64,000 nt of DNA from Macrostomum lignano (taxonomy: Eukaryota): NCBI GenBank assembly GCA_002269645.1, contig NIVC01000087.1, positions 1-64,000 of the forward strand, given 5' to 3'. The notes beneath the pieces are model-generated. The model ran no database searches. It had not been told where the DNA came from and was given only the letters and a program-made list of their open reading frames with translations. Position numbers and translations under genes: made by a program. The stretch's first letter is position 1, and every line of letters starts with the position of its first letter. This document shows positions 1-54,228 of this stretch, piece by piece.

Positions 1-3000
1 CCGAAGCGTCGCGTCCTGCACAAGGTCAGCCTGGTACAAGAGACACTACGGTCGCAAGTGGCGCTGGTACTACACCCGAGTGGTCTACCATCGACGCTAC
101 GGTCGCAAGTGGCGCGTGCACTTTAGGAAGTGGCTGAAGCGAGTGTGGAAGACCGTCACCGAAGCGTCGCGTCCCTGCACAAGGTCACCTGGTACAAGAG
201 ACACTACGGGTCGCAAGTGGCGCTGGTACTACACCCGAGTGGTCTACCGTCGACGCTACGGTCGCAAGTGCGCGTGCACTTTAGGAAGTGGCTGAAGCGA
301 GTGTGGAAGAAGCCGTCACCGAAGCGTCGCGTCCTGCACAAGGTCACCTGGTACAAGAAGACACTACGGTCGCAAGTGGCGCTGGTACTACACCCGAGTG
401 GTCTACCGTCGACGCTACGGTCGCAAGTGGCGCGTGCACTTTAGGAAGTGGCTGAAGCGAGTGTGGAAGAAGCCGTCACCGAAGCGTCGCGTCCTGCACA
501 AGGTCACTGGTACAAGAGACACTACGGTCGCAAGTGCGCTGGTACTACACCCGAGTGGTCTACCGTCGACGCTACGGTCGCAAGTGCGCGTGCACTTTAG
601 GAAGTGGCTGAAGCGAGTGTGGAAGAAGCCGTCACCGAAGCGTCGCGTCCTGCACAAGGTCACCTGGTACAAGAGACACTACGGTCGCAAGTGGCGCTGG
701 TACTACACCCGAGTGGTCTACCGTCGACGCTACGGTCGCAAGTGGCGCGTGCACTTTAGGAAGTGGCTGAAGAGAGTGTGGAAGAAGCCGTCACCGAAGC
801 GTCGCGTCCTGCACAAGGTCACCTGGTACAAGAGACACTACGGTCGCAAGTGGCGCTGGTACTACACCCGAGTGGTCTACCATCGACGCTACGGTCGCAA
901 GTGGCGCGTGCACTTTAGGAAGTGGCTGAAGCGAGTGTGGAAGAAAGCCGTCACCGAAGCGTCGCGTCCTGCACAAGGTCACCTGGTAGCAGAGAGACAC
1001 TACGGTCGCAAGTGGCGCTGGTACTACACCCGAGTGGTCTACCGTCGACGCTACGGTCGCAAGTGGCGCGTGCACTTTAGGAAGTGGCTGAAGCGAGTGT
1101 GGAAGAAGCCGTCACCGAAGCGTCGCGTCCTGCACAAGGTCACCTGGTACAAGAGACACTACGGTCGCAAGTGGCGCTGGTACTACACCCGAGTGGTCTA
1201 CCGTCGACGCTACGGTCGCAAGTGGCGCGTGCACTTTAGGAAGTGGCTGAAGCGAGTGTGGAAGAAGCCGTCACCGAAGCGTCGCGTCCTGCACAAGGTC
1301 ACCTGGTACAAGAGACACTACGGTCGCAAGTGGCGCTGGTACTACACCCGAGTGGTCTACCGTCGACGCTACGGTCGCAAGTGGCGCGTGCACTTTAGGA
1401 AGTGGCTGAAGCGAGTGTGGAAGAAGCCGTCACCGAAGCGTCGCGTCCTGCACAAGGTCACCTGGTACAAGAGACACTACGGTCGCAAGTGGCGCTGGTA
1501 CTACACCCGAGTGGTCTACCGTCGACGCTACGGTCGCAAGTGCGCGTGCACTTTAGGAAGTGGCTGAAGCGAGTGTGGAAGAAGCCGTCACCGAAGCGTC
1601 GCGTCCTGCACAAGGTCACCTGGTACAAGAGACACTAGGTCGCAAGTGGCGCTGGTACTACACCCGAGTGGTCTACCGTCGACGCTACGGTCGCAAGTGG
1701 CGCGTGCACTTTAGGAAGTGGCTGAAGAGAGTGTGGAAGAAGCCGTCACCGAAGCGTCGCGTCCTGCACAAGGTCACCTGGTACAAGAGACACTACGGTC
1801 GCAAGTGGCGCTGGTACTACACCCGAGTGGTCTACCGTCGACGCTACGGTCGCAAGTGGCGCGTGCACTTTAGGAAGTGGCTGAAGAGAGTGTGGAAGAA
1901 GCCGTCACCGAAGCGTCGCGTCCTGCACAAGGTCCCCTGGTACAAGAGACACTACGGTCGCAAGTGGCGCTGGTACTACACCCGAGTGGTCTACCGTCGA
2001 CGCTACGGTCGCAAGTGGCGCGTGCACTTTAGGAAGTGGCTGAAGCGAGTGTGGAAGAAGCCGTCACCGAAGCGTCGCGTCCTGCACAAGGTCACCTGGT
2101 ACAAGAGACACTACGGTCGCAAGTGGCGCTGGTACTACACCCGAGTGGTCTACCGTCGACGCTACGGTCGCAAGTGGCGCGTGCACTTTAGGAAGTGGCT
2201 GAAGAGAGTGTGGAAGAAGCCGTCACCGAAGCGTCGCGTCCTGCACAAGGTCACCTGGTACAAGAGACACTACGGTCGCAAGTGGCGCTGGTACTACACC
2301 CGAGTGGTCTACCGTCGACGCTACGGTCGCAAGTGGCGCGTGCACTTTAGGAAGTGGCTGAAGAGAGTGTGGAAGAAGCCGTCACCGAAGCGTCGCGTCC
2401 TGCACAAGGTCACCTGGTACAAGAGACACTACGGTCGCAAGTGGCGCTGGTACTACACCCGAGTGGTCTACCGTCGACGCTACGGTCGCAAGTGGCGCGT
2501 GCACTTTAGGAGTGGCTGAAGAGAGTGTGGAAGAAGCCGTCACCGAAGCGTCGCGTCCTGCACAAGGTCACCTGGTACAAGAGACACTACGGTCGCAAGT
2601 GGCGCTGGTACTACACCCGAGTGGTCTACCGTCGACGCTACGGTCGCAAGTGGCGCGTGCACTTTAGGAAGTGGCTGAAGAGAGTGTGGAAGAAGCCGTC
2701 ACCGAAGCGTCGCGTCCTGCACAAGGTCACCTGGTACAAGAGACACTACGGTCGCAAGTGGCGCTGGTACTACACCGAGTGGTCTACCGTCGACGCTACG
2801 GTCGCAAGTGGCGCGTGCACTTTAGGAAGTGGCTGAAGAGAGTGTGGAAGAAGCCGTCACCGAAGCGTCGCGTCCTGCACAAGGTCACCTGGTACAAGAG
2901 ACACTACGGTCGCAAGTGGCGCTGGTACTACACCCGAGTGTCTACCGTCGACGCTACGGTCGCAAGTGGCGCGTGCACTTTAGGAAGTGGCTGAAGCGAG

Positions 3001-6000
3001 TGTGGAAGAAGCCGTCACCGAAGCGTCGCGTCCTGCACAAGGTCACCTGGTACAAGAACACACTACGGTCGCAAGTGGCGCTGGTACTACACCCGAGTGG
3101 TCTACCGTCGACGCTACGGTCGCAAGTGGCGCGTGCACTTTAGGAAGTGGCTGAAGAGAGTGTGGAAGAAGCCGTCACCGAAGCGTCGCGTCCTGCACAA
3201 GGTCACCTGGTACAAGAGACACTACGGTCGCAAGTGGCGCTGGTATACACCCGAGTGGTCTACCGTCGACGCTACGGTCGCAAGTGGCGCGTGCACTTTA
3301 GGAAGTGGCTGAAGAGAGTGTGGAAGAAGCCGTCACCGAAGCGTCGCGTCCTGCACAAGGTCACCTGGTACAAGAGACACTACGGTCGCAAGTGGCGCTG
3401 GTACTACACCCGAGTGGTCTACCGTCGACGCTACGGTCGCAAGTGGCGCGTGCACTTTAGGAAGTGGCTGAAGAGAGTGTGGAAGAAGCCGTCACCGAAG
3501 CGTCGCGTCCTGCACAAGGTCACCTGGTACAAGAGACACTACGGTCGCAAGTGGCGCTGTACTACACCCGAGTGGTCTACCGTCGACGCTACGGTCGCAA
3601 GTGGCGCGTGCACTTTAGGAAGTGGCTGAAGCGAGTGTGGAAGAAGCCGTCACCGAAGCGTCGCGTCCTGCACAAGGTCACCTGGTACAAGAGACACTAC
3701 GGTCGCAAGTGGCGCTGGTACTACACCCGAGTGGTCTACCGTCGACGCTACGGTCGCAAGTGCGCGTGCACTTTAGGAAGTGGCTGAAGAGAGTGTGGAA
3801 GAAGCCGTCACGCGAAGCGTCGCGTCCTGCACAAGGTCACCTGGTACAAGAGACACTACGGTCGCAAGTGGCGCTGGTACTACACCCGAGTGGTCTAACC
3901 GTCGACGCTACGGTCGCAAGTGGCGCGTGCACTTTAGGAAGTGGCTGAAGCGAGTGTGGAAGAAGCCGTCACCGAAGCGTCGCGTCCTGCACAAGGTCAC
4001 CTGGTACAAGAGACACTACGGTCGCAAGTGGCGCTGGTACTACACCCGAGTGGTCTACCGTCGACGCTACGGTCGCAAGTGGCGCGTGCACTTTAGGAAG
4101 TGGCTGAAGAGAGTGTGGAAGAAGCCGTCACCGAAGCGTCGCGTCCTGCACAAGGTCACCTGGTACAAGAGACACTACGGTCGCAAGTGGCGCTGGTACT
4201 ACACCCGAGTGGTCTACCGTCGACGCTACGGTCGCAAGTGGCGCGTGCACTTTAGGAAGTGGCTGAAAGCGAGTGTGGAAGAAGCCGTCACCGAAGCGTC
4301 GCGTCCTGCACAAGGTCACCTGGTACAAGAGACACTACGGTCGCAAGTGGCGCTGGTACTACACCCGAGTGGTCTACCGTCGACGCTACGGTCGCAAGTG
4401 GCGCGTGCACTTTAGGAAGTGGCTGAAGAGAGTGTGGAAGAAGCCGTCACCGAAGCGTCGCGTCCTGCACAAGGTCACCTGGTACAAGAGACACTACGGT
4501 CGCAAGTGGCGCTGGTACTACACCCGAGTGGTCTACCGTCGACGCTACGGTCGCAAGTGGCGCGTGCACTTTAGGAAGTGGCTGAAGAGAGTGTGGAAGA
4601 AGCCGTCACCGAAGCGTCGCGTCCTGCACAAGGTCACCTGGTACAAGAGACACTACGGTCGCAAGTGGCGCTGGTACTACACCCGAGTGGTCTACCGTCG
4701 ACGCTACGGTCGCAAGTGGCGCGTGCACTTTAGGAAGTGGCTGAAGAGCGAGTGTGGAAGAAGCCGTCACCGAAGCGTCGCGTCCTGCACAAGGTCACCT
4801 GGTACAAGAGACACTACGGTCGCAAGTGGCGCTGGTACTACACCCGAGTGGTCTACCGTCGACGCTACGGTCGCAAGTGGCGCGTGCACTTTAGGAAGTG
4901 GCTGAAGAGAGTGTGGAAGAAGCCGTCACCGAAGCGTCGCGTCCTGCACAAGGTTGGTTGGTTCAAGCGACGTTATGGAACAACTGGCGTTGGTACTACA
5001 CTCGAGTTGTTTATCAGCATCGATTTGGTCGCAAGTGGAGGGTGCATTTAAAGCTATGGGAAAAGCAACACGTGGAAGCGTCCGGCTCCAAAACGTCCGC
5101 CGTTATAGTGCACACTTTGAGATGGTTTAAAAGCATATCCAAGAATTGGAGGTGGTACTTACACCGGTGGTTTATCATCGAAAGGAATTAAGGGATCACT
5201 TTAGAAGGTGGGTGAAAACGGTCTGGAAGAAGCCGTCGCCGAAGCGTCGCGTCCTGCACAAGGTCACCTGGTACAAGAGACACTACGGTCGCAAGTGGCG
5301 CTGGTACTACACCCGAGTGGTCTACCGTCGACGCTACGGTCGCAAGTGGCGCGTGCACTTTAGGAAGTGGCTGAAGCGAGTGTGGAAGAAGCCGTCACCG
5401 AAGCGTCGCGTCCTGCACAAGGTCACCTGGTACAGAGACACTACGGTCGCAAGTGGCGCTGGTACTACACCCGAGTGGTCTACCGTCGACGCTACGGTCG
5501 CAAGTGGCGCGTGCACTTTAGGAAGTGGCTGAAGCGAGTGTGGAAGAAGCCGTCACCGAAGCGTCGCGTCCTGCACAAGGTCACCTGGTACAAGAGACAC
5601 TACGGTCGCAAGTGGCGCTGGTACTACACCCGAGTGGTCTACCGTCGACGCTACGGTCGCAAGTGGCGCGTGCACTTTAGGAAGTGGCTGAAGCGAGTGT
5701 GGAAGAAGCCGTCACCGAAGCGTCGCGTCCTGCACAAGGTTGGTTGGTTCAAGCGACGTTATGGAACAAACTGGCGTTGGTACTACACTCGAGTTGTTTA
5801 TCAGCATCGATTTGGTCGGAAGTGGAGGGTGCATTTTAAACTATGGGAAAAGCACACGTGGAAGCGTCCGGCTCCAAAACGTCCGCACGTTATAGTGCAC
5901 ACTTTGAGATGGTTTAAAAAGCATTATCCTAAGAATTGGAGGTGGTATTACACTCGGCTTGTTTATCATCGAAAATTTGGAATTAAATGGAGATCTCACT

Positions 6001-6200
6001 TCCGAAGGTGGGTGAAAACGGTCTGGAAGAAGCCGTCGCCGAAGCGTCGCGTCCTGCACAAGGTCACCTGGTACAAGAGACACTACGGTCGCAAGTGGCG
6101 CTGGTACTACACCCGAGTGGTCTACCGTCGACGTACGGTCGCAAGTGGCGCGTGCACTTTAGGAAAGTGGCTGAAACGCGTTTGGAAGAAGCCGAGCCCA
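1..6200 (+). repeat. 159-bp coding tandem repeat, ~39 copies, with an internal duplicated motif CTACGGTCGCAAGTGGCGC (YGRKWR) twice per unit
   Basis: Period measured directly (gtactacacc at 1021 and 1180); near-identical copies. Confidence 0.97.
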
Positions 6201-6536
6201 AAGAATGTGCGCAAGGTCACGTGGTTCAATCGCCGATCTGGGCGGCAATGCTTGGCGTTTGCACGTAAAGCGCACGAAGCATCGTTTAAGGAAGTACAGC
6301 ATCGCATGGTTTAAGCACCGATACGGGTCCAACTGGAAGTGGTTCTACGTCAAGCGAAAATATCGTCGGCGCTATGGTTCTAGTTGCGCGTACACTTCAA
6401 GAAGTGGCGAAAGACCGTCTGGAAGAGGCCGGCGCCGAAGAGTGTGCGCAAGGTGACGTGGTTCAATCGCCGAGCTGGGCGGCATGCTTGGCGTTTGCGC
6501 GTAAAGCGCACCAAGCATCGTGTGAAGAAGCACTAA
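1..6536 (+). CDS. 5'-truncated giant repetitive cationic/aromatic protein (>2,100 aa): ~39 x 53-aa unit RVVYRRRYGRKWRVHFRKWLKRVWKKPSPKRRVLHKVTWYKRHYGRKWRWYYT, then a degenerate C-terminus ending ...KRTKHRVKKH-stop (TAA 6534-6536); interrupted by 1-2 nt indels
   Basis: Only this frame is stop-free across a whole unit (the other two + frames carry TAG/TGA in each unit). Diverged units (4951-5232, 5738-6025, 6200-6533) keep W/Y/R/K positions with third-position changes, e.g. tgg cgc tgg tac tac acc cga gtg gtc tac vs tgg cgt tgg tac tac act cga gtt gtt tat. AT-rich non-repetitive sequence follows the stop. The frameshifts may be sequencing errors. Confidence 0.7.
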
Positions 6537-7204
6537 TTAGATGCAGCCTGAAGGTGATTTTATTTCAGCTGGTTCGCTTGTGATTGCATATCTGACGACA
6601 GTGTGTTGAGTAACGTGCAACTTTATAAGTGTCACAGAATGATTTTCAACAATTCAACAGCTACGATTTCTTATCCTGCTGGGCCAAGGCTGGCTTCATT
6701 TTTTACATTTTACACAGGTTAGGTGTCTGTTACGAAGATGTTCCGATCTGAAAGTATTTTTATCTGGTTTAAGCGGCAGACTGAAATCTAGTAGCAGACA
6801 ACGTTTTCTAAAGCATAGCTTGTGATATTAACTACTTCTAATGATACTACACATCTGCGTGCCTGTTCTACTTACTATGTATGAACTTCAATTTGTTAAC
6901 ACTCATAAATATTTATTGAATTCTTCAGCTGCTAACAACGTAACAAATTTTATTGGACTGAAAATTTCTCGAACAAACACCATAACAGCTTTTTCTAAGA
7001 ATCTCTAAAATACATAGCGTAACACTTTAAACAGCATTCAATAGCTGCTTTATTTGATTAATTCAACATTTGGTAGCTTAGCAAAACTATTAATTTTCGA
7101 AATGTATCAGACTAAAATACTTCACTCAGGAAGACTACGTAAAAATGGACAATAAGAAGGAAAAGACAATAAGGCTTAAATGCATTAAGCCACGAGTGCT
7201 CTGA

Positions 7205-9944: not shown

Positions 9945-11945
9945 ACTGGCGCCCCACAGTGTCTTCAACTGGTGCCCCACAGTGTCTTCAGTTAGTGTCT
10001 CTCAGTGTCTTCAGTTAGTGTCTCTCAGTGTCTTCAGTTAGTGTCTCTCAGTGTCTTCAGTTAGTGTCTCTCAGTGTCTTCAGTTAGTGTCCCTCAGTGT
10101 CTTCAGTTAGTGTCTCTCAGTGTCTTCAGTTAGTGTCTCTCAGTGTCTTCAGTTAGTGTCTCTCAGTGTCTTCAGTTAGTGTCCCTCAGTGTCTTCAGTT
10201 AGTGTCCCTCAGTGTCTTCAGTTAGTGTCCCTCAGTGTCTTCAACTGGCGCCCCACAGTGTCTTCAGTTAGTGTCCCTCAGTGTCTTCAGTTAGTGTCCC
10301 TCAGTGTCTTCAGTTAGTGTCTCTCAGTGTCTTCAGTTAGTGTCTCTCAGTGTCTTCAGTTAGTGTCTCTCAGTGTCTTCAGTTAGTGTCTCTCAGTGTC
10401 TTCAGTTAGTGTCCCTCAGTGTCTTCAGTTAGTGTCTCTCAGTGTCTTCAGTTAGTGTCTCTCAGTGTCTTCAGTTAGTGTCTCTCAGTGTCTTCAGTTA
10501 GTGTCCCTCAGTGTCTTCAGTTAGTGTCCCTCAGTGTCTTCAGTTAGTGTCCCTCAGTGTCTTCAACTGGCGCCCCACAGTGTCTTCAGTTAGTGTCCCT
10601 CAGTGTCTTCAGTTAGTGTCCCTCAGTGTCGTCAGTTAGTGTCTCTCAGTGTCTTCAGTTAGTGTCTCTCAGTGTCTTCAGTTAGTGTCCCTCAGTGTCT
10701 TCAGTTAGTGTCCCTCAGTGTCTTCAGTTAGTGTCCCTCAGTGTCTTCAGTTAGTGTCCCTCAGTGTCTTCAGTTAGTGTCCCTCAGTGTCTTCAACTGG
10801 CGCCCCACAGTGTCTTCAGTTAGTGTCCCTCAGTGTCTTCAGTTAGTGTCCCTCAGTGTCTTCAGTTAGTGTCCCTCAGTGTCTTCAGTTAGTGTCCCTC
10901 AGTGTCTTCAGTTAGTGTCTCTCAGTGTCTTCAGTTAGTGTCTCTCAGTGTCTTCAGTTAGTGTCCCTCAGTGTCTTCAGTTAGTGTCCCTCAGTGTCTT
11001 CAGTTAGTGTCCCTCAGTGTCTTCAGTTAGTGTCCCTCAGTGTCTTCAGTTAGTGTCCCTCAGTGTCTTCAGTTAGTGTCTCTCAGTGTCTTCAGTTAGT
11101 GTCTCTCAGTGTCTTCAGTTAGTGTCCCTCAGTGTCTTCAGTTAGTGTCCCTCAGTGTCTTCAGTTAGTGTCCCTCAGTGTCTTCAGTTAGTGTCCCTCA
11201 GTGTCTTCAACTGGCGCCCCACAGTGTCTTCAGTTGGTGTCCTTCAGTGTCTTCAGTTAGTGTCCCTCAGTGTCTTCAGTTAGTGTCCCTCAGTGTCTTC
11301 AGTTAGTATCCCTCAGTGTCTTCAGTTAGTGTCCCTCAGTGTCTTCAGTTAGTGTCCCTCAGTGTTTTCAGTTAGTGTCTCTCAGTGTCTTCAACTGGTG
11401 CCCCACAGTGTCTTCAACTGGCGCCCCACAGTGTTTTCAGTTAGTGATCCCTCTGTGTCTTCAGTTAGTGTCCCTCATTGTCTTCAACTGGCGCCCCACA
11501 GTGTTTTCAGTTAGTGCCCCTCAGTGTCTCAGTTAGTGTCCCTCAGTGTCTTCAGTTAGTGTCCCTCAGTGTCTTCAGTTAGTGTCCCTCAGTGTCTTCA
11601 ACTGGCGCCCCACAGTGTCTTCAACTGGCGCCCCACAGTGTTTTCAGTTAGTGATCCCTCAGTGTCTTCAGTTAGTGTCCCTCATTGTCTTCAACTGGCG
11701 CCCCACAGTGTCTTCAGTTAGTGTCCCTCAGTGTCTTCAGTTAGTGTCCCTCAGTGTCTTCAACTGGCGCCCCACAGTGTCTTCAACTGGCGCCCCACAG
11801 TGTTTTCAGTTAGTGATCCCTCAGTGTCTTCAGTTAGTGTCCCTCATTGTCTTCAACTGGCGCCCCACAGTGTCTTCAGTTAGTGTCCTTCAGTGTCTTC
11901 AGTTAGTGTTCCTCAGTGTCTTCAACTGGAGCCCCACAGAGTCTC
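9945..11945. repeat. 23-bp minisatellite CAGTGTCTTCAGTTAGTGTC(C/T)CT with variant unit CAGTGTCTTCAACTGGCGCCCCA
   Basis: Period 23 (cagtg at 10026 and 10049). Confidence 0.97.
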
Positions 11946-16184: not shown

Positions 16185-17615
16185 ATGTCTGACGCCAGAC
16201 GCAACAACTGCTCGGAGAGCTTAGTCGCTCAGGCCTTCAACCAGATCAGCCTGCCGCTAATCGCAGTCATATCCGTGACCTCAATCCTGCTGAATGTGTT
16301 GAACATACTCATCTTCAGCAAGAAGAAGATGATCTCGCCAACTAACAGCATACTGTTAGGCATCGCGGTGAGCGACCTAATCAAAGTGCTCATGTTCCTG
16401 GTCACCTCGGTAGTTCCCCTGGACCAGATGAGCCACAGCTACGACTACCAGGTGTTCTACCTGTTCTGCAACGTGGCCATGTACCTGATGCACGCTTTCG
16501 CCCTGTGGTGCGGCGTCCTGCTGGCTCTGTTCCGCTTTTTCTACCTGCGCTACTACGCCTCCAGCCGCACCAAGGTGTGGTTCAGCCTGGCCCGCGCCCG
16601 CCTGGCCGTCTGCCTGGCCTTCCTGGCCAACCTGGTGGCCGTGGTGCCCTATGCCAGCAGCCTGCAGATCCGCGGCTTTAACGACACGCACAATAACACC
16701 GGGCAGAGCGGCCACAGCCCGGTGATGTACAGTCCGAGTCTGGACGAGCGGCACGAATTCAAAATCCGATTGTTCAACGGCCTGGCCCAGAAGGTTTTGC
16801 CCTGCCTCATCATGACCTGCTTCTGCTTCTTCATCATCAAGAGTCTGCGCCAGACAGAGAAGCGTCGCGAGTCGCTGGTGAATCTGAACAGCCGTTCGAG
16901 GACTGGCGGGATGAACCGGAACAGCAGCAGCAGCAGCAGGCGCGGCTGCGAGAGCTTCGCCAACTCGGAGGTAGAGACTACGCGGCAGCCTTCGCCGTCG
17001 CCGCAGCACTCGCTGTCGCAGCTGTCGCCGACGCCGACCCAGGGGACACAGCGATCGTCGAGAGGCTCAGCGTCGAAAAATTCTCGACGACAGCGTCGAT
17101 CGAGGGATCACCGACGAACTACCAGCTTCCTGCTGGTCATCATTGTGCTGTACATCCTGTACGAAATCCCGATGAGCATGCTGAACATCCTGGAGGACCC
17201 GATGTTCAACCTGCCGGGGGTGCAGTGCTTCTTCTATTTGTTCATCCGCATGCTGAACACGCTGGGCCTGATCAACAACTCGGTGAACTTCGTGCTCTAT
17301 TGCTTCATGAGCAAGCAGTTCCGCCAGGTGTTTAAGCGCATGTTCGGTCTGCTCTGCTTCCGGCAGCCCAAGACTGGCAACGCTGGCTCGGCGCGCTCCA
17401 CCACCGGGGCCCCAACACAAGGAGGTTCCGCCGGCGGCGGCGGCGGCGTCGACAGGACGAGGCGAAAACGGCTCGGTACCGACAACAGCTGCGGCGGTCG
17501 CAGCGGCGGTGGCGGGGGCGGCTTGATTCACCTCTCGCTGAGGTCCACCGGCGACGACGAGCGGTCCCGGTTCAGCGTGTCCGAGGGACCCAGCAACGCA
17601 TTCTACGATCCCTGA
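16185..17615 (+). CDS. Class A (rhodopsin-like) 7TM peptide-type GPCR, 476 aa, myosuppressin/FMRFamide-receptor-like (DMSR/Srw-type); intronless CDS
   Basis: Seven hydrophobic segments; TM1-2 LLNVLNILIFSKKKMISPTNSILLGIAVSDL, TM3 end LLALFRF, TM5 PCLIM, TM6 LYEIP, TM7/helix 8 NNSVNFVLYCFMSKQFR; N-terminal NCS sequon; long Ser/Arg-rich ICL3. Confidence 0.93.
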   Translation: MSDARRNNCSESLVAQAFNQISLPLIAVISVTSILLNVLNILIFSKKKMISPTNSILLGIAVSDLIKVLMFLVTSVVPLDQMSHSYDYQVFYLFCNVAMYLMHAFALWCGVLLALFRFFYLRYYASSRTKVWFSLARARLAVCLAFLANLVAVVPYASSLQIRGFNDTHNNTGQSGHSPVMYSPSLDERHEFKIRLFNGLAQKVLPCLIMTCFCFFIIKSLRQTEKRRESLVNLNSRSRTGGMNRNSSSSSRRGCESFANSEVETTRQPSPSPQHSLSQLSPTPTQGTQRSSRGSASKNSRRQRRSRDHRRTTSFLLVIIVLYILYEIPMSMLNILEDPMFNLPGVQCFFYLFIRMLNTLGLINNSVNFVLYCFMSKQFRQVFKRMFGLLCFRQPKTGNAGSARSTTGAPTQGGSAGGGGGVDRTRRKRLGTDNSCGGRSGGGGGGLIHLSLRSTGDDERSRFSVSEGPSNAFYDP

Positions 17616-24341: not shown

Positions 24342-25028
24342 TCAACTCTCGTCCATTTTCTCCTCATCCTTGGCGTCAGGCTTGGCAGCGGAAGCGGCCA
24401 TTTCGACATCCTCGCTGCCTTCAGCAGCAGCGGCGGCGGCAGTCGGCTTCGGCTGCTGCAGGGCGCGCATAAACGCCTCGGCGTTGCCTTCGTTAGCCGC
24501 TTGAACGGCGGCCTCGCCGACGCCGAACTGGGCAACCAGCGGTCCCAGCTCGCCGGTGCGCAGAGCGGCCGCGAACGCCGACACGCACTGGCGAAATTGC
24601 GGCGATTGAACTGAACGACGCAATTCGTCGACGCTGCGCGGCAGATCCGGACTGTCGGGCAGGAAAGGCATCAGACGGGCCTGCAGCTGGGCGTCGGCTA
24701 GCAGGGGCAGCAGCGATTCGATTGGCAGGGCGTCGTTCAGGTCAAACTGGGCGCCAGCTGAGCCAGCCGAAGCCGGAGCGGCGCCTTCGGGAGCCTGGAT
24801 GGAGGTGAGGATTGTCTGCAGATCGCTAAGCTGAATTCGACCGCCGGCTGTGCGCTGCTGCTGCTGCAGTGGCGTCTGTTGAAGCTCGCGACCTCCGCCG
24901 CTGCCGGCGGCGACTCCACCGGCGGAGGCGGCCGCGGTGGCCGGGCGCTCCGGCATTGTCTGTCTGGCGCCCGAAGCCGCGGAATTGGCGCCGCTGCCGG
25001 CGGGGCGAACTCCAGGCGAGCTTTGCAC
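24342..25028 (-). CDS. ADRM1: ADRM1/Rpn13 proteasomal ubiquitin receptor, coding exon 3 (C-terminal DEUBAD/UCH37-binding domain)
   Basis: IQLSDLQTIL, LMPFLP...ELRRSVQSPQFRQCVSAFAAALRTGELGPLVAQFG...EAFMRAL, C-terminal DEEKMDES; acceptor CAG at 25029-25031, phase 0. Confidence 0.92.
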   Translation of the reverse strand: MQSSPGVRPAGSGANSAASGARQTMPERPATAAASAGGVAAGSGGGRELQQTPLQQQQRTAGGRIQLSDLQTILTSIQAPEGAAPASAGSAGAQFDLNDALPIESLLPLLADAQLQARLMPFLPDSPDLPRSVDELRRSVQSPQFRQCVSAFAAALRTGELGPLVAQFGVGEAAVQAANEGNAEAFMRALQQPKPTAAAAAAEGSEDVEMAASAAKPDAKDEEKMDES

Positions 25029-25067
25029 CTGGGCGCGGGATGGAATGAGTAGGCTTAACAATGGACA

Positions 25068-26393
25068 ATTCTCATAGATCTGGGGCGATTCTCATAGATC
25101 TGGGGCGATTCTCATAGATCTGGGGCGATTCTCATAGATCTGGGGCGATTCTCATAGATCTGGGGCGATTCTCATAGATCTGGGGCGATTCTCATAGATC
25201 TGAGGCGATTCTCATAGATCTGGGGCAACTCTCATAGATCTGGGGCGATTCTCATAGATCTGAGGCGATTCTCATAGATCTGGGGCGATTCTCATAGATC
25301 TGGGGCGATTCTCATAGATCTGGGGCGATTCTCATAGATCTGGGGCGATTGTCATAGATCTGGGACAACTCTCATAGATCTGGGGCGATTGTCATAGATC
25401 TGGGGCGATTCTCATAAATCTGGGGCAACTCTCATAGATCTGGGGCGATTCTCATAGATCTGGGGCGATTTTCATAGATCTGAGGCGATTCTCATAGATC
25501 TGGGGCGATTCTCATAGATCTGGGGCGATTCTCATAGATCTGGGGCAACTCTCATAGATCTGGGGCGATTGTCATAGATCTGGGACAACTCTCATAGATC
25601 TGGGGCGATTGTCATAGATCTGGGGCGATTCTCATAGATCTGGGGCGATTCTCATAGATCTGGGGCAACTCTCATAGATCTGGGGCGATTCTCATAGATC
25701 TGGGGCAACTCTCATAGATCTGGGGCAACTCTCATAGATCTGGGGCGATTCTCATAGATCTGGGGCGATTCTCATAGATCTGGGGCGATTCTCATAGATC
25801 TGGGGCAACTCTCATAGATCTGGGGCGATTCTCATAGATCTGAGGCGATTCTCATAGATCTGGGGCGATTCTCATAGATCTGAGGCGATTCTCATAGATC
25901 TGGGGCAACTCTCATAGATCTGGGGCGATTCTCATAGATCTGGGGCGATTCTCATAGATCTGGGGCGATTCTCATAGATCTGGGGCGATTCTCATAGATC
26001 TAGGGCTATTCCCAGAGATCTGTGGCGATTCTCATAGATCTGGGGCGATTCTCAGAGATCAGGGGCGATTCTCATAGATCTGGGGCGATTCTCATAGATC
26101 TGAGGCGATTCTCAGAGATCTGGGGCGATTCTCATAGATGTGGGCGATTCTCATAAATCTGAGGCAATTCTCATAGATCTGGGGCGATTCTCATAAATCT
26201 TAGGCGATTCTCATAGATCTGGGGCGATTCTCATAGATCTGAGGCGATTCTCATAGATCTGAGGCGATTCTCATAGATCTGAGGCGATTCTCATAGATCT
26301 GGGGCGATTCTCATAGATCTGAGGCGATTCTCATAGATCTGGGGCGATTCTCATAAATCTGAGGCAATTCTCATAGATCTGTGGCGATTCTCA
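25068..26393. repeat. 20-bp minisatellite GATTCTCATAGATCTGGGGC filling ADRM1 intron 2
   Basis: ~65 tandem copies. Confidence 0.97.
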
Positions 26394-26425
26394 CTGGCTT
26401 GACCTAAAAAGCTAAGCAAACCTAC

Positions 26426-26782
26426 CCGACTAGGCACTGAAGAGCCCGTAGGCGCCTCCGAGGCCCCATCAGAAGCAGTAGATCCCGCCCCAGTAGAGGC
26501 CGGTCGCATCATCCCGGACGGGCTAAGGCCCATCTGCATGCCCATCTGCAGCAGTTGCATCAGCTCGCTCTGGGAAATATTGCCAAACATACTACTGAGC
26601 TCCGACTCGCCTAAGCCGCTAAGTGCGGAGCTCAGGCTGCCCGAACCGCCGCCGGCTCCACCGATGCCGCCAGCCGAGGCCGCGCCGCCGCCGCCAGCCC
26701 GACCGGAGCCCGGCTGAGGCGGGTTGTTCAGCGAATCGTTCACCTTCTTGCACAGATCGGCGTCTTTGTCCTCTTTCGGCTC
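26426..26782 (-). CDS. ADRM1: ADRM1/Rpn13 coding exon 2 (EPKEDKDADLCKKVNDSLNNPP... Gly/Ser-rich linker)
   Basis: Continues the Pru domain in frame (WMQ|EPKEDKD); acceptor CAG 26783-26785, donor GTAGG at 26425; 357 bp, phase 0/0. Confidence 0.9.
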
Positions 26783-26844
26783 CTGACAGGGTTGTTAACA
26801 CATGATAGCAGTAGGATCTGACTGACCCGCCCTTCTATTTACTG

Positions 26845-27260
26845 AATCTGCCATCCTCATCTTCTGAATCTGCCCTTTTATTTACTAAATCTGCCATTCT
26901 CATCATCTGAATCTGCCCTCTTATTTACTAAATCTGCCATTCTCATCCTCTGAATCTGCCCTCTTATTTACTAAATCTGCCATTCTCATCCTCTGAATCT
27001 GCCCTCTTATTTACTAAATCTGCCATTCTCATCCTCTGAATCTGCCCTCTTATTTACTAAATCTGCCATTCTCATCCTCTGAATCTGCCCTCTTATTTAC
27101 TAAATCTGCCATTCTCATCCTCTGAATCTGCCCTCTTATTTACTAAATCTGCCATTCTCATCCTCTGAATCTGCCCTCTTATTTACTAAATCTGCCATTC
27201 TCATCCTCTGAATCTGCCCTCTTATTTACTAAATCTGCCATTCTCATCCTCTGAATCTGC
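26845..27260. repeat. 43-bp minisatellite in ADRM1 intron 1
   Basis: tctcatcc at 26941 and 26984. Confidence 0.92.
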
Positions 27261-27442
27261 CAACCTCATCTTCCGAATCTGTCCTCCTTATCTTCCGAAT
27301 CTGCCAACCAACCTCACCTTCCGAATCTGCCATCCTCATCTTCCGAATCTGCCCTCCTCATCTACTGAATTTACTATCCCAGTCTGAACTCTGATTAATC
27401 CAGGTTCCAATTCTCAGCATCTCAATAGCCCCAACCGCACAC

Positions 27443-27763
27443 CTGCATCCAGAAGAAGTACTTCTTGCTGCTAGATTTGAACTTGAGCAGATAAACCCGT
27501 CCAGTCGTGCACTGAGTCACCCGTTTAAATTCGCAATCATCAGGAAAGATGATCAAATCGTCTTCAACCAAGCCGCTGGTTCGATCTTTCCAACAAAAGT
27601 GCATCAGATTGTCGTCGCTCTGGTGCACGTAGACCATGCCCTTTTTATTGATAGGCCGGACCCAACCATCCTGCAGTGTCATCTTGCCAGCCTTGAATTC
27701 CACCAGATAGCGAGAGGCTGGAGCTACGGAACCGCCAGAGCCAGCGAATAAAGCGTGCGACAT
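27443..27763 (-). CDS. ADRM1: ADRM1/Rpn13 coding exon 1 (Pru domain); spliced product ~454 aa
   Basis: [10 protein letters not shown]...[67 protein letters not shown] is the conserved Rpn13 Pru signature; ATG 27763, donor GT at 27442. Confidence 0.96.
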
Positions 27764-27849
27764 TGTTGATTGGCGTGGGGGTTTCTGCAAAGATTTGACA
27801 GTCTATTAGTGACTTTGGCTAGATGCAGAGTTGATGATCTAGGTGATGA

Positions 27850-43814: not shown

Positions 43815-44155
43815 CCATAGTAACCTACGCAATCATAGTAGCCATAATAACCTACGCGTCTCTAGTAACCATAGTAACCTACGCGTCTATAGTTACCATA
43901 GTAACCTACGCGCTATAGTAACCTACGCGTCTATAGTTACCATAGTAACCTACGCGTCTATAGTAACCAACGCGTCTATAGTTACCATGGTAACCTACGC
44001 GTCTATAGTTACCATAGTAACCTACGCGTCTATAGTTACCATAGTAACCTACGCGTCTATAGTAACCTACGCGTCTATAGTTACCATAGTAACCTACGCG
44101 TCTATAGTAACCTACGCGTCTATAGTTACCATAGTAACCTACGCGTCCATAGTAA
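43815..44155. repeat. 18/27-bp minisatellite (TATAGTTACCA)TAGTAACCTACGCGTC overlapping the stop codon of nuclear receptor NR-1
   Basis: Tandem copies; the last codons VTMDA-stop of NR-1 are one repeat unit. Confidence 0.9.
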
Positions 44156-44840
44156 CCAAAGACGGCTCGCTGTTAACGGAAGATTGCAGCATCTCAGAGA
44201 AAAGCTGCGGCATTCTAATGGCCTGCCTATCAAAATAGGAGGACCAGAAGCCCAAACAGAATAATCGAATCGAGTTGATGCGGCCTGACAGAGCCATCAA
44301 TTTGCCGCGGCGGACAACATCCGGACAGATTCGGCGAAGCTCTCTAAGAAAAGTCGACTGCAACTTGTCGATTTCGTCCGGATTGTCGAAATGCTGGCCT
44401 GGCGGGCACTGCAACATAAAGATTGCTTTAAGCAGCAGGAATTCGATGCGACTGACGTTCCACTCGGTGAGCAGTCGAGCTGTCAATCGAATCTGCTGGC
44501 TGGCACGCATGGCCAGGCTGCTGTTGAACGCGCTCACCCGGCCTGGGGGCACGCAGACGTTTGCCGCGAAGTACAGCAGGCCGGTGAAGGGCACCGAGTT
44601 CATGGACAGCTCGAATGAGACCAGACCGGCCCAGTGGGCCTGCAACAGGCGGATGCGGTCGGGCATGGCGACCCGGCTAAAGCCCGGCAAGTCTTTGGCG
44701 AACTGTACCAGCCTGGCCGAGTGGGCATCCAGACAGGGCAGGACAATCACGGCCAGTTCGCGCGGCTCCACGGAGAGGAAATCTTCGCCCATTGTTGATG
44801 TTTCCATTGAGAACTGGGGCCTGTCCATGGAGCGGATGGT
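44139..44840 (-). CDS. ERR/NR3-like nuclear receptor NR-1, exon 3 (whole ligand-binding domain)
   Basis: LVQFAKDLPGFSRVAMPDRIRLLQAHW (LBD signature), SVPF, EFLLLKAI, RRGKLM, AF-2-like LFSEML; acceptor TTGCAG at 44841, phase 0. Confidence 0.88.
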   Translation of the reverse strand, partial: TIRSMDRPQFSMETSTMGEDFLSVEPRELAVIVLPCLDAHSARLVQFAKDLPGFSRVAMPDRIRLLQAHWAGLVSFELSMNSVPFTGLLYFAANVCVPPGRVSAFNSSLAMRASQQIRLTARLLTEWNVSRIEFLLLKAIFMLQCPPGQHFDNPDEIDKLQSTFLRELRRICPDVVRRGKLMALSGRINSIRLFCLGFWSSYFDRQAIRMPQLFSEMLQSSVNSEPSLVTMDA

Positions 44841-45224
44841 CTGCAACCGACGGTGAGGCGATGCAGATATTCAAGTTACTGAGAGGCATTCACAACGGTT
44901 GCTGAGCTTCTAGAGGTGTGGGGCGGCCGGGTGTTGGCAGAGCAGCGTCTGAATCTTGCGCCGCGAACCCTGGTTCGATTCCGTGCGTTACATCACAGCC
45001 ATGAGGGCCAACCCCTCAAAGACGATTAGAAAGTCAGGGGCCGATGTACACCTGTGTGAGCTGTGTATGAGTGCGTGACTGCGTACAGTATTGGTGCGCT
45101 TGTATGTTGCTCAGGAGTCTGCGGAACGGCCAGAATTTGCCTCAGCGCTGGTTGTAAAATATGAACTCAGGAACAGGTACAGAGGCTCAAGAGGGTGCGG
45201 GCAGACATACGCGGAGCTCCTTAC

Positions 45225-45548
45225 TTTACACAGTTCGCTTTCGACTTCTCCAGCAGACGGTGAGGCTGTGCGCGGCGTGTCAGCGCTGGAATTCGTTGAA
45301 GCTGCCGGACCAGAAGCTGCTTGATTCGCCGCGGCGGCGGCTCGAGCGGCGGCTCTGGCAGCGGCCCTGGCGGCTGAGGCCTCAGCCCGGTGCAGCCGGG
45401 GGTATCGCTCCGACTCGGTGCCAGGAGCTACCGTGCGCAGCATGCCCGGCTGCATCCCGGACATGAGGCAGCGGCGCCACCGGCAGGCGGGGCACTGCTT
45501 CCGGCTGGCGTTGTTCACCGGACACAGCGGCGACTGCTGTTTCGGGTC
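45225..45548 (-). CDS. Nuclear receptor NR-1, exon 2 (second half of zinc finger 2, hinge)
   Basis: [24 protein letters not shown]; acceptor after a pyrimidine tract (AATTCAG), donor GTAAGG at 45224; exact ends could shift to nearby alternative sites. Confidence 0.8.
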
Positions 45549-45592
45549 CTGAATTGGGGGACGGGCGGGGACTGTGCTGCGGCTGAGGCTGT

Positions 45593-45624
<32 letters not shown>

Positions 45625-45653
45625 CAGACACACAGACAGACAGACACAGACAC

Positions 45654-45694
<41 letters not shown>

Positions 45695-45709
45695 GACAGA
45701 CACACAGGC

Positions 45710-45750
<41 letters not shown>

Positions 45751-45975
45751 CACAGACACACAGACAGACAGACAGACACACAGACAGACACACACTCTGA
45801 CAGACAGACACACAGACAGACACACAGACACACAGACAGACACACAGACAGACAGACAGACACACAGACAGACACACAGACAGACACACAGACAGACAGA
45901 CAGACAGACAGACACACAGACAGACACACAGACAGACACACAGACAGACACACAGACAGACAGACAGACAGACAG
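45593..45975. repeat. (GACA/CACA)n microsatellite inside NR-1 intron 1, which splits the DNA-binding domain
   Basis: Direct reading. Confidence 0.97.
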
Positions 45976-46000
45976 ATGCATAGCAAGTCAATCCTCTCAC

Positions 46001-46201
46001 CTGCAGAAACGGCTGGTACTGACCGTCGGTACTGCTAGCGCACAGGTAAGTCAGGCAGGAGTGCACAGTCCGCTTAAAGAAAGCTTTACAAGCATTGCAC
46101 GTAGCGGCTCCGTAGTGCACGCCGGTGGCGGTCAGGCCACAGACGGCGCACAAACCGACGCCAGAAAATTGAGGGTTCAGTGGGTCGGAGTAGTCGGTCA
46201 T
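46001..46201 (-). CDS. Nuclear receptor NR-1, exon 1 (zinc finger 1, P-box CNACKA); spliced product ~408 aa from ATG 46201
   Basis: [29 protein letters not shown] = C4 zinc finger; donor GTGAGA at 46000; the true start may lie in an upstream exon. Confidence 0.85.
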
Positions 46202-46479
46202 GAGGAAGTGTTGGGACTCAGTCTGCGGCAACCTTTGCCTGTAGCTGCAAGATGGCTGTTACTGTCTGCGTCGACGTTGCTGGCTCTGAAGTCATAATTT
46301 GATTTCGAAGATTTAGCTAAATAAAAGTTTTCGTTTTTAGTATATCTGACTTAAGCTTTAAATTTTAGGCGCTTAGACCAAGGATTTACAAAAAAAACCT
46401 AACACACCACTTAGATACATCCCAATCTCAAACATCTTAACTCACCTTCCCCTCACCAATGTACACATAATCAAACCCT

Positions 46480-49400
46480 TCACTATATCCCAGTCAATTT
46501 ACACACGCTCAAACCCTTCCCCAACCCCACCAACGTACACACGCTCAAAACCTTCACAACACCAGCCAATGTACACCCGCTCAAGTCCTTCACTATCCCA
46601 GCCAATGTACACCCGCTCAAGTCCTTCACTATCCCAGCCAATGTACACCCGCTCAAACCATTCACTGCCGCAGCCAATGTACACCCGCTCAAACCATTCA
46701 CTGCCCCAGCCAATGTACACCCGCTCAAACCATTCACTGCCCCAGCCAATGTACACCCGCTCAAACCATTCACTGCCCCAGTCAATGTACACCCGCTCAT
46801 CAAACACTTCACTGCCCCAGCCAATGCACACCCGCTCATCAAACACTTCACTGCCCCAGCCAATGCACACCCGCTCATCAAACACTTCACTGCCCCAGCC
46901 AATGCACACCCGCTCATCAAACACTTCACTGCCCCAGCCAATGCACACCCGCTCATCAAACACTTCACTGCCCCAGCCAATGCACACCCGCTCATCAAAC
47001 ACTTCACTGCCCCAGCCAATGCACACCCGCTCATCAAACACTTCACTACCCCAGCCAATGCACACCCGCTCATCAAACACTTCACTGCCCCAGCCAATGC
47101 ACACCCGCTCATCAAACACTTCACTACCCCAGCCAATGCACACCCGCTCATCAAACACTTCACTACCCCAGCCAATGCACACCCGCTCATCAAACACTTC
47201 ACTGCCCCAGCCAATGCACACCCGCTCATCAAACACTTCACTGCCCCAGCCAATGCACACCCGCTCATCAAACACTTCACTGCCCCAGCCAATGCACACC
47301 CGCTCATCAAACACTTCACTACCCCAGCCAATGCACACCCGCTCATCAAACACTTCACTGCCCCAGCCAATGTACACCCGCTCATCAAACACTTCACTGC
47401 CCCAGCCAATGCACACCCGCTCATCAAACACTTCACTGCCCCAGCCAATGCACACCCGCTCATCAAACACTTCACTGCCCCAGCCAATGCACACCCGCTC
47501 ATCAAACACTTCACTGCCCCAGCCAATGCACACCCGCTCATCAAACACTTCACTGCCCCAGCCAATGCACACCCGCTCATCAAACACTTCACTGCCCCAG
47601 CCAATGCACACCCGCTCATCAAACACTTCACTGCCCCAGCCAATGCACACCCGCTCATCAAACACTTCACTGCCCCAGCCAATGCACACCCGCTCATCAA
47701 ACACTTCACTGCCCCAGCCAATGTACACCCGCTCATCAAACACTTCACTGCCCCAGCCAATGCACACCCGCTCATCAAACCATTCACTGCCCCAGCCAAT
47801 GTACACCCGCTCATCAAACACTTCACTGCCCCAGCCAATGCACACCCGCTCATCAAACACTTCACTGCCCCAGCCAATGCACACCCGCTCATCAAACACT
47901 TCACTGCCCCAGCCAATGCACACCCGCTCATCAAACACTTCACTGCCCCAGCCAATGCACACCCGCTCATCAAACACTTCACTGCCCCAGCCAATGCACA
48001 CCCGCTCATCAAACACTTCACTGCCCCAGCCAATGCACACCCGCTCATCAAACACTTCACTGCCCCAGCCAATGCACACCCGCTCATCAAACACTTCACT
48101 GCCCCAGCCAATGCACACCCGCTCATCAAACACTTCACTGCCCCAGCCAATGTACACCCGCTCATCAAACACTTCACTGCCCCAGCCAATGCACACCCGC
48201 TCATCAAACCATTCACTGCCCCAGCCAATGTACACCCGCTCATCAAACACTTCACTGCCCCAGCCAATGCACACCCGCTCATCAAACCATTCACTGCCCC
48301 AGCCAATGCACACCCGCTCATCAAACACTTCACTGCCCCAGCCAATGCACACCCGCTCATCAAACACTTCACTGCCCCAGCCAATGCACACCCGCTCATC
48401 AAACACTTCACTACCCCAGCCAATGCACACCCGCTCATCAAACACTTCACTGCCCCAGCCAATGCACACCCGCTCATCAAACACTTCACTGCCCCAGCCA
48501 ATGCACACCCGCTCATCAAACACTTCACTGCCCCAGCCAATGCACACCCGCTCATCAAACACTTCACTGCCCCAGCCAATGCACACCCGCTCATCAAACA
48601 CTTCACTGCCCCAGCCAATGCACACCCGCTCATCAAACACTTCACTACCCCAGCCAATGCACACCCGCTCATCAAACACTTCACTACCCCAGCCAATGCA
48701 CACCCGCTCATCAAACACTTCACTGCCCCAGCCAATGCACACCCGCTCATCAAACACTTCACTGCCCCAGCCAATGCACACCCGCTCATCAAACACTTCA
48801 CTGCCCCAGCCAATGTACACCCGCTCATCAAACACTTCACTGCCCCAGCCAATGCACACCCGCTCATCAAACACTTCACTGCCCCAGCCAATGTACACCC
48901 GCTCATCAAACACTTCACTGCCCCAGCCAATGCACACCCGCTCATCAAACACTTCACTGCCCCAGCCAATGCACACCCGCTCATCAAACACTTCACTGCC
49001 CCAGCCAATGCACACCCGCTCATCAAACACTTCACTGCCCCAGCCAATGCACACCCGCTCATCAAACACTTCACTGCCCCAGCCAATGCACACCCGCTCA
49101 TCAAACACTTCACTGCCCCAGCCAATGCACACCCGCTCATCAAACACTTCACTGCCCCAGCCAATGCACACCCGCTCATCAAACACTTCACTGCCCCAGC
49201 CAATGCACACCCGCTCATCAAACACTTCACTGCCCCAGCCAATGTACACCCGCTCATCAAACACTTCACTGCCCCAGCCAATGCACACCCGCTCATCAAA
49301 CCATTCACTGCCCCAGCCAATGTACACCCGCTCATCAAACACTTCACTGCCCCAGCCAATGCACACCCGCTCATCAAACCATTCACTGCCCCAGCCAATG

Positions 49401-49915
49401 CACACCCGCTCATCAAACACTTCACTGCCCCAGCCAATGCACACCCGCTCATCAAACACTTCACTGCCCCAGCCAATGCACACCCGCTCATCAAACACTT
49501 CACTGCCCCAGCCAATGCACACCCGCTCATCAAACACTTCACTGCCCCAGCCAATGCACACCCGCTCATCAAACACTTCACTGCCCCAGCCAATGCACAC
49601 CCGCTCATCAAACACTTCACTGCCCCAGCCAATGCACACCCGCTCATCAAACACTTCACTGCCCCAGCCAATGCACACCCGCTCATCAAACACTTCACTG
49701 CCCCAGCCAATGCACACCCGCTCATCAAACACTTCACTGCCCCAGCCAATGCACACCCGCTCATCAAACACTTCACTGCCCCAGCCAATGTACACCCGCT
49801 CATCAAACACTTCACTACCCCAGCCAATGCACACCCGCTCATCAAACACTTCACTGCCCCAGCCAATGCACACCCGCTCATCAAACACTTCACTGCCCCA
49901 GCCAATGTATACACG
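46480..49915. repeat. 39-bp minisatellite CCCAGCCAATG(C/T)ACACCCGCTCATCAAACACTTCACTGC (~85 copies; 36-bp variants at the left end)
   Basis: caaacac at 46801 and 46840. Confidence 0.98.
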
Positions 49916-51680: not shown

Positions 51681-51729
51681 CAGTCATCAAAGTGTGCCAA
51701 TAAGTTAATAAATCGACAAATTTGCTAGA

Positions 51730-53625: not shown

Positions 53626-53683
53626 ATGCCAGATAATGCCAGATATGATGAGAATCACCTCCCACGCCACCCAATTAACTTGC

Positions 53684-54056: not shown

Positions 54057-54228
54057 CTGTAATGGAGAGGTATTTCATGGAATAATATGGGATTACACTC
54101 CGGCTTTAAGGATCCCAAATATTTGACATCTGGGGGCATTAACAACCTCGAAATCAAAGGATCTGGGGAGCATTGTAACCTGGGAATTGTTGGGATCTGG
54201 AGGGGTGATTGGGATCTGGAGGGATTAA

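Follow-up and report, generated by a model that had tools for sequence, protein, structure and literature searches.

A tryptophan- and arginine-rich tandem repeat of Macrostomum lignano as the probable 3' end of a gene for a giant secreted protein

Animal glues, silks and mucus work through giant repetitive secreted proteins, of which, to our knowledge, very few are known from flatworms. The DNA analysed here is a stretch of 64,000 nucleotides from the flatworm Macrostomum lignano (contig NIVC01000087.1, positions 1 to 64,000 of the forward strand), which is referred to throughout as the window. Its first 6,536 positions are taken up by a tandem repeat with a period of 159 bp and by the diverged tail that follows it, and the repeat reads as a protein unit of 53 residues that is rich in arginine, lysine, tryptophan and tyrosine. 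The best explanation for window positions 1-6536 is that they form the 3' end of one long exon, belonging to a gene for a giant secreted repeat protein of M. lignano, and we consider it very probable that this is a real gene for such a protein.

The closest described system comes from the same animal. Mlig-ap1 is a giant secreted gland protein of 5,407 residues, more than 3,600 of which lie in extremely cationic Lys/Arg-rich repeats (Wunderer et al. 2019, PMC6410801). These repeats bind negatively charged carbohydrates and give cohesion, and the protein has no homologues in other phyla (PMC6410801). The likeness to the protein described here lies in the host, the size, the secretion and the cationic repeats, and the differences are chemical and structural. 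The KR regions of Mlig-ap1 are poor in aromatic residues, as in its antigen peptide SRKPRRKNRKSRKP, whereas the repeat protein of the window is 25% aromatic. Additionally, these regions stand on either side of a Cys-rich core made up of C-type lectin, vWD/C8/TIL and 17 EGF domains, whereas the protein here is almost free of Cys. Mlig-ap2 differs as well, carrying vWD, TIL, LDL and TSP-1 domains and repeats of 255/221 residues (PMC6410801). Identity with either adhesive protein was considered and rejected, as Pfam finds none of their domains in the N-terminus, in the array or in the UniProt model A0A1I8IPI2 that joins array and non-array residues, and the repeat is a different one.

Outside flatworms, the mussel foot proteins mfp-1 and Pvfp-1 are also secreted, basic and built from tandem repeats with Pro-containing linkers, and they combine Lys with Tyr/3,4-dihydroxyphenylalanine (DOPA) in mfp-1 or with Trp in Pvfp-1 (PMC4275877). 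In Pvfp-1 of Perna viridis, a modified Trp (7-hydroxy-Trp) stands in place of DOPA (PMC4275877). Unlike the 53-residue unit, the mussel units span 10 residues, are Pro-rich, far less charged, molluscan and unrelated in sequence; moreover, mussel function depends on hydroxylation of Tyr or Trp after translation. Indolicidin, tritrpticin and lactoferricin, which have 13-25 residues in mature form and derive from small precursors, resemble the repeat in their Trp plus Arg/Lys chemistry and amphipathic cationic segments, but the protein here extends over thousands of residues with no evident processing sites. Matrilins, collagen VI and the byssal protein PTMP1 are extracellular matrix or mucus proteins with VWA domains. 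They would share with the present protein an N-terminal VWA-like module on a secreted multimeric material protein, and phmmer ties residues 108-213 to VWA/collagen proteins, but the VWA score here misses the gathering threshold of Pfam, and no relationship is seen in the remaining sequence. What is new is the repeat, its Trp-rich and acid-free chemistry and the architecture, while the kind, a giant cationic secreted gland repeat protein, is already known from Mlig-ap1. A chemistry of about 11% Trp, 11% Tyr, 25% Arg and 17% Lys that stays acid-free for thousands of residues was not found in the described examples.

Tandem Repeats Finder places the 159-bp period at window 1-6194 on the + strand, with 39.0 copies, 92% matches and a score of 10461. 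The window opens on a repeat unit, and the array thus begins inside the gene. Unit borders were set by anchor-based segmentation plus alignment. A clean copy of the canonical unit, named A, lies at 1115-1273 and translates in one frame to PKRRVLHKVTWYKRHYGRKWRWYYTRVVYRRRYGRKWRVHFRKWLKRVWKKPS, and each of the other five frames carries at least one stop per unit. Unit A contains 13 R, 9 K, 3 H, 6 W, 6 Y, 1 F and 6 V, and no D, E, C or M, which amounts to a net charge of +22 with 13 aromatic residues (42% K+R and 25% aromatic; about 25% Arg, 17% Lys, 11% Trp, 11% Tyr and 6% His). A preliminary description made from the letters of the window had given this composition and charge, and a recount of the unit at 1115-1273 returned identical values. 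It had also counted about 39 units and placed the gene start outside the window, which agrees with the 39.0 copies and with a window that begins on a unit. Its claim that the protein has no acidic residues stood for unit A and the tail and failed for unit B, which has one Glu, and for the N-terminal 700 residues, which are encoded outside the window and of which Asp/Glu make up 8-16%. The absence of acidic residues is valid for the amplified array alone, not for the whole protein.

The remainder of the gene was traced on other contigs. A frame-corrected A-B-C-A-tail query found a sole cluster among 5.8 billion proteins, that of M. lignano PAA91463.1, which is entered as 'hypothetical protein BOX15_Mlig025189g1, partial' and contains A, B, C and tail units. 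Its contig, NIVC01000086.1 of assembly GCA_002269645.1 (locus L001), runs collinear with the window both through the array and across the minisatellites that follow it. UniProt A0A1I8IPI2, a model of 4094 residues from the era of the older ML2 assembly and a cluster mate of PAA91463.1, joins about 540 non-array residues to the array. Its N-terminal part, used as a query, led to BOX15_Mlig034012g1 (709 residues, partial) on two further contigs, L002 and L003. The loci of BOX15_Mlig034012g1 have an ATG exon and canonical GT-AG introns, with the 159-bp array at most about 120 bp past the last exon. In L003 this last exon enters the array in frame (...QVECGRGKPHVKTATWYKRHYGHKWRWYY...) and continues for 1102 open codons before the first indel. 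The upstream search proposed with the preliminary description thus gave the gene start, a signal peptide and a weak VWA-like domain, all of them on other contigs.

The order of units differs between these contigs. The window reads at least A31-BC-AAA-BC-A-tail and L002 reads A40-BC-AAA-B before an assembly gap, and as the two patterns agree, they would belong to a version of about 48 units and about 3,400 residues. L003 reads A30-BCAABC-A9 up to the contig end, and L001 reads at least A10-BCAABC-A10-BCAABC-A20-BC-A10-BCAABC-A-tail; together they suggest a longer version with at least 91 units, about 5,700 residues and a charge that would approach +2000. A check of L002-window collinearity through the downstream receptor gene (described below) returned no exact gene on record and no protein match at E<=1e-50. 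The DV1 line of M. lignano carries large duplications (PMC5730564), and several homeologous copies of the gene are thus expected. A higher-order pattern is also visible in the arrays, with blocks of about 10, 20, 30 or 40 A units split by BC or BC-AA(A)-BC modules. As block sizes differ between contigs, the array may have changed by unequal crossing-over, some 10 units at a time, and its copy number may vary among homeologues or alleles.

One line of evidence for coding comes from the diverged units. Units A and B differ at 47 nucleotides, split 9/13/25 by codon position, with pN (nonsynonymous differences per site) of 0.195, pS (synonymous) of 0.65 and an omega (dN/dS) of 0.15. Between A and C, pN is 0.24 and pS 0.92, and omega is 0.31 for A against D, 0.18 for C against D and 0.29 for two tail segments against each other. 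Read in the coding frame, A and B agree at 38/53 amino acids, vs 24/53 and 27/53 in the other two frames. Replacements are conservative (Y/F, R/K, V/L), every Trp position of the core motif is retained, and the Tyr/Phe and Lys/Arg positions are conserved among the diverged units. The codon use of unit A, with a GC content at third positions (GC3) of 0.81, all Lys as AAG and all Tyr as TAC, resembles that of other genes in the window. This upholds the earlier remark that diverged units keep the protein and change third codon positions, and the comparison of canonical with diverged units that had been proposed gave dN/dS of 0.15-0.31, not values near 1.

A non-coding satellite with an accidental frame could in principle look similar, and the window contains more than 30 other tandem arrays. 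One of these served as a control. It is a 39-bp array of 87 copies at window 46525-49907, which yields open reading frames (ORFs) of 1143, 1142 and 1166 residues in three frames and on both strands, and an open frame in a tandem array alone is thus no proof of coding. A related 36/108-bp array is located at 50672-51681. The satellite explanation is nevertheless very improbable, as is that of a pseudogene copy in the window. It is opposed by the dN/dS of 0.15-0.3 between diverged units, by an array that is read in frame from a gene with a signal peptide and keeps its frame intact over 11.7 kb in L001, and by transcript-based Mlig_3_7 models, which are present for both gene ends. The Mlig_3_7 models were built from RNA-seq (StringTie/TACO) and a mapped de novo transcriptome, not ab initio (PMC5730564). 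Purifying selection, in-frame exon continuity and transcript-based models support an array that is coding and not a plain satellite, and the array is presumably translated.

In the window copy itself, the longest stop-free run of the array is 423 codons, unit lengths vary between 152 and 166 bp, and about 43 small indel events are needed for frame repair when the units are compared with clean reference units. Such a number of frame breaks is what a pseudogene would offer, but the pattern of the breaks stands against decay. The indels are all singletons of 1-2 bp, nearly all at doubled bases (GG, CC, AA), and they outnumber the non-polymorphic substitutions of the array, which is an error signature rather than one of decay. 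The sole recurrent substitution among A units is the synonymous CGA/AGA, both coding for Arg, and after about two frame corrections the tail is identical to the C-terminus of PAA91463.1. In L001, all 71 visible units measure exactly 159, 159 or 165 bp, multiples of 3, and the frame holds 2889 open codons to the common stop plus 1058 upstream, split by a single 1-bp deletion. As the frame is open across L001, the breaks in the window look like long-read consensus errors and not like pseudogenisation, although a pseudogenised homeologue keeps a small share of the probability. PacBio assemblies of the M. lignano genome have such consensus problems, and transcripts with intact ORFs are fewer on the older ML2 assembly than on Mlig_3_7 (PMC5730564).

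The protein reconstructed from these contigs would begin with a signal peptide, followed by an acidic stretch, a VWA-like region, degenerate repeats, an array of about 48 to more than 91 units and a diverged basic tail. Residues 1-27 of the BOX15_Mlig034012g1 product form the signal peptide MRLGGIAPLYATAVLLLIVALAPTATA, judged by eye, with a basic n-region, a 14-residue hydrophobic core, A-x-A at -3/-1 and a cut before KRE. Residues 28-95 are acidic and Ser/Thr-rich, with a net charge of -5. The VWA-like region covers residues ~100-270; Pfam PF00092 matches residues 113-216 at E=0.0015 and 19.2 bits, under the 23.8-bit cutoff, and phmmer against 1.84 billion representatives matched, outside the gene's own copies, two multi-VWA proteins over residues 108-213 (E=5e-5 and 4e-4). 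The D-x-S-x-S metal-site (MIDAS) motif is not evident in this region, where the sequence reads LAIDKNAIS. Residues 271-709, with 24% aromatic residues, 25% K+R and 8% D+E, are degenerate copies of a motif of about 17 residues, [FYW]-K-K-K-[YF]-G-x-K-W-x-x-H-[YF], over about 440 residues. The 53-residue unit itself consists of three such motifs (17+17+19), and the degenerate repeats of the N-terminus are recognised by a hidden Markov model of units A-D (independent E-values 1e-9 and 2e-8). The shared motif suggests that the array is a recent amplification of an acid-free, Arg-enriched form of an older repeat. In the array, diverged B-C pairs interrupt the runs of unit A.

The preliminary description had proposed a secreted gland product, and secretion is supported by MRLGGIAPLYATAVLLLIVALAPTATA, encoded by the 5' exons on two contigs in which the gene's 5' end and the 159-bp array occur together. 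It had also allowed for a nucleic-acid-condensing protein, that is, an intracellular polycation of protamine or chromatin type or of RNA granules. The extreme positive charge would suit such a role, the aromatic residues could stack on bases, and A0A1I8IPI2 starts without a signal peptide. The transcript-based Mlig_3_7 model, in contrast, has the signal peptide with its A-x-A motif on canonically spliced exons that the ML2 model merely lacks. Furthermore, more than 3,400 residues and a VWA-like domain are unlike sperm basic proteins, and the gene was not in the examined parts of the testis-region gene lists. This alternative, disfavoured by the N-terminal signal peptide, is left with almost no probability. 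A protamine or sperm nuclear basic protein in the strict sense, which is small, nuclear and without a signal peptide, was likewise set aside in view of the signal peptide and the more than 3,400 residues.

For a secreted protein of this build, a material or adhesive type of mechanism, giving a glue, a cohesive matrix, or mucus or rhabdite material, has in our view about an even chance of being correct. In such a mechanism, a gland cell would make the protein and pack it with a polyanionic counter-ion, as its extreme charge would require storage with a polyanion. After release it would act as an extracellular polycation whose Lys and Arg may bind anionic glycans, surfaces or membranes, and the dense Trp, Tyr and Phe beside Arg and Lys may provide cation-pi and pi-pi cohesion. 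Such a protein could form a glue or a cohesive matrix, or a material of mucus/rhabdite type, with the N-terminal VWA-like domain possibly serving in anchoring or multimerisation. The carbohydrate-binding Lys/Arg repeats of Mlig-ap1 offer a functional precedent in the same animal, and Pvfp-1 one for the use of Trp. The many near-identical units, the differences in copy number and the VWA-like module point to a material protein, be it one of these or a tanned structure, and giant, near-identical repeats of variable copy number would be typical of secreted material proteins.

The same chemistry and secretion could also serve defence. Here the protein, or 53-residue peptides cut from it, would be a Trp/Arg polycation with antimicrobial or anti-predator action in mucus or rhabdites, disrupting anionic membranes as peptides of the indolicidin, tritrpticin and lactoferricin type do, and a multi-copy precursor would be processed at its Pro-flanked basic linkers, KKPSPKRR. 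The signal peptide, the 42% K+R, the 11% Trp and the absence of acidic residues in the unit are all in keeping with it, as is the strongest amphipathic segment of the unit, HFRKWLKRVWKK, with a helical hydrophobic moment of 0.85. Helical propensity is also seen in AlphaFold2 models run without an alignment: the BOX15_Mlig034012g1 product has a mean predicted local distance difference test (pLDDT) score of 53.5 with low confidence in the VWA-like region, and reaches a pLDDT of 70-90 over residues 270-400, in the degenerate N-terminal repeats, as helices. Nonetheless, 48 to more than 91 copies are above the usual number, and acidic pro-spacers are missing. Each unit has ten dibasic positions and no discrete cleavage site, with no R-x-[KR]-R furin motif, and a VWA-like domain with long degenerate repeats suits a matrix protein better. 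Thus we regard a defence polycation as unlikely, and a cohesive secreted material as the better reading of the unit.

At HMMER sensitivity, no homologue outside M. lignano was found in the two protein libraries (5.8 billion proteins and 1.84 billion representatives), which seemingly do not include transcriptomes of other Macrostomum species. Pfam gave nothing above threshold for the array, A0A1I8IPI2 and the N-terminus, with the sub-threshold VWA match standing alone. The UniProt names of the fragments do not hold: A0A1I8IPI2 is called 'Reverse transcriptase domain-containing protein', and Pfam shows no such domain in it, and A0A1I8FLB2 is called 'CARD domain-containing protein', while the near-identical BOX15_Mlig034012g1 product is without a CARD in Pfam (A0A1I8FLB2 itself was not scanned). 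As assemblies and short-read transcripts are interrupted within the array, both public annotations have the gene in separate pieces that are unnamed or misnamed. The searched literature contained neither the gene IDs (Mlig034012, Mlig025189) nor the accessions or peptide strings. The whole protein is undescribed, and its sequence fragments are already public, split and either unnamed or misnamed. This bears out the novelty suspected in the preliminary description: GenBank and UniProt hold 'hypothetical' or automatically named fragments with no publication found, and the protein searches gave no characterised match and this gene alone for the unit query.

Another possibility is a cross-linked precursor of egg-shell, cement or stylet-type sclerotin, in which Tyr, Lys and His would be tanned by phenol-oxidase (quinone) as in trematode vitelline proteins. 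Secretion, a giant repetitive build, 11% Tyr, 17% Lys and 6% His would fit such a precursor, and the Tyr/Phe and Lys/Arg positions are kept between diverged units. The flatworm egg-shell precursors known so far are small and Gly/Tyr-rich, in contrast to the protein described here, and the gene is absent from the published in situ patterns of gonad, antrum and developing egg, which is a weak point against. Such a tanned precursor seems to us improbable. Additionally, the gene was not in the examined parts of the lists of genes for the testis, ovary and tail regions, where repeat genes map poorly, and these absences are a weak hint against a product restricted to the gonads or the tail.

Several points weigh against the reading of one giant secreted protein with a material role. 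The 5' and 3' halves of the gene lie on different Mlig_3_7 contigs and no single sequence covers the whole gene, while the one model that joins non-array residues to the array, the ML2-era A0A1I8IPI2, is without the signal peptide and the C-terminal tail. Owing to the separate halves and this incomplete model, we infer the pairing of 5' with 3' contigs and, with it, the continuity, the unit number and the total length. On the structural side, AlphaFold2 gives no more than low-confidence helices for PAA91463.1, which represents the array (mean pLDDT 54.4), and a Foldseek search of the BOX15_Mlig034012g1 model against PDB returned no match at E<0.5. On the side of expression, Mlig034012 and Mlig025189 were not found in the supplements of PMC10786194, PMC5730564, PMC5816591, PMC7336406 and PMC10092323, with partial coverage that makes this weak, nor is the gene in the complete published in situ table with Mlig_3_7 IDs (antrum, prostate, testes, ovaries, developing eggs and pharyngeal glands). 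Lastly, RNA interference (RNAi) of Mlig-ap1 or Mlig-ap2 alone abolishes substrate adhesion (PMC6410801), so that the Trp/Arg repeat protein is not needed to explain tail adhesion. A PDB sequence search with PAA91463.1 also found no relative.

A further step, which we put forward tentatively, is that the protein could be the first known member of a class of secreted material proteins specific to Macrostomum, in which Trp together with Tyr, Arg and Lys would carry cohesion, by cation-pi and pi-pi contacts, without acidic residues, Cys or known adhesive domains. It might, for example, make up the protein matrix in rhabdites, or in a gland secretion not yet described, and be kept there with a polyanion as a complex coacervate. 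If the protein is a component of a glue or matrix, it would offer a simple, genetically encoded module of 53 residues for cation-pi wet adhesion or coacervation, and if it is a defence polycation, it would represent an unusual delivery route for Trp/Arg peptides. As RNAi, in situ hybridisation and transgenesis exist in M. lignano, the question is directly testable.

Within the window, the units of the + strand can be followed one by one. Thirty-one canonical A units (159 bp and 53 residues each) occupy 1..4928, as assigned by Tandem Repeats Finder, unit alignment and comparison with clean L001 units. The diverged unit B, PKRRVLHKVGWFKRRYGTNWRWYYTRVVYQHRFGRKWRVHFKLWEKHTWKRPA, aligns at 4929..5086, and unit C follows at 5087..5238 in a patch of poor quality, with 11 indels in 152 bp (its clean copies have 55 residues). 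Three canonical A units at 5239..5714 precede the second unit B at 5715..5872, through which the ORF 5367-6314 runs, and the second unit C, PKRPHVIVHTLRWFKKHYPKNWRWYYTRLVYHRKFGIKWRSHFRRWVKTVWKKPS, at 5873..6038. The last A unit, at 6039..6196, carries 3 indels and 3 substitutions. The diverged C-terminal tail of 113 codons, PKNVRKVTWFNRRSGRHAWRLHVKRTKHRLRKYSIAWFKHRYGSNWKWFYVKRKYRRRYGSSWRVHFKKWRKTVWKRPAPKSVRKVTWFNRRAGRHAWRLRVKRTKHRVKKH, was read by three-frame translation at 6197..6533 and ends in the TAA stop codon of the gene at 6534..6536, which matches the L001 stop at 11678-11680. The codons of the rare B and C units form an observation of their own. Nearly all synonymous sites differ between A (GC3 0.81) and C (GC3 0.49), the pS of 0.92 exceeds random expectation, and B and C use a systematically AT-richer codon set for nearly the same peptide. 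This contrast could reflect old units that escaped homogenisation, or selection against recombination.

Past the stop codon, an AT-richer unique 3' flank extends over 6537..7200 on the + strand, where GC falls from 0.59 to 0.45; it is collinear with L001 and is presumably the 3' untranslated region. An 8-bp minisatellite starts at 7208, the first of more than 30 minisatellite arrays in window 7208-63419, with periods of 2-215 bp and many of them 0.5-3 kb long, located in introns and intergenic DNA. The window is consistent in this with the whole M. lignano genome, 15% of which is simple and tandem repeats (PMC5730564).

Other genes are also contained in the window. An intact single-exon ORF of 476 residues at 16185-17615 (+) encodes a G-protein-coupled receptor of the rhodopsin family (Pfam 7TM_GPCR_Srw 7.5e-32, 7tm_1 2.4e-15). 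No identical product is on record and no match at E<=1e-50 was found among 5.8 billion proteins, and public protein sets of M. lignano apparently lack an annotation of the receptor. Rpn13/ADRM1, a ubiquitin receptor of the proteasome, has exons at 24342-27790 (-); the Pru domain is encoded at 27422-27790 and the UCH-binding domain at 24342-25061, and the introns in between hold 20-bp and 43-bp minisatellites (25068-26393 and 26829-27370). Three nuclear hormone receptor paralogues stand in tandem on the - strand, at 44139-46231, 53675-57700 and 59522-61955, each with a C4 zinc-finger exon and ligand-binding-domain exons (Pfam zf-C4 9e-18, Hormone_recep 1e-12), and together they look like a local gene cluster.

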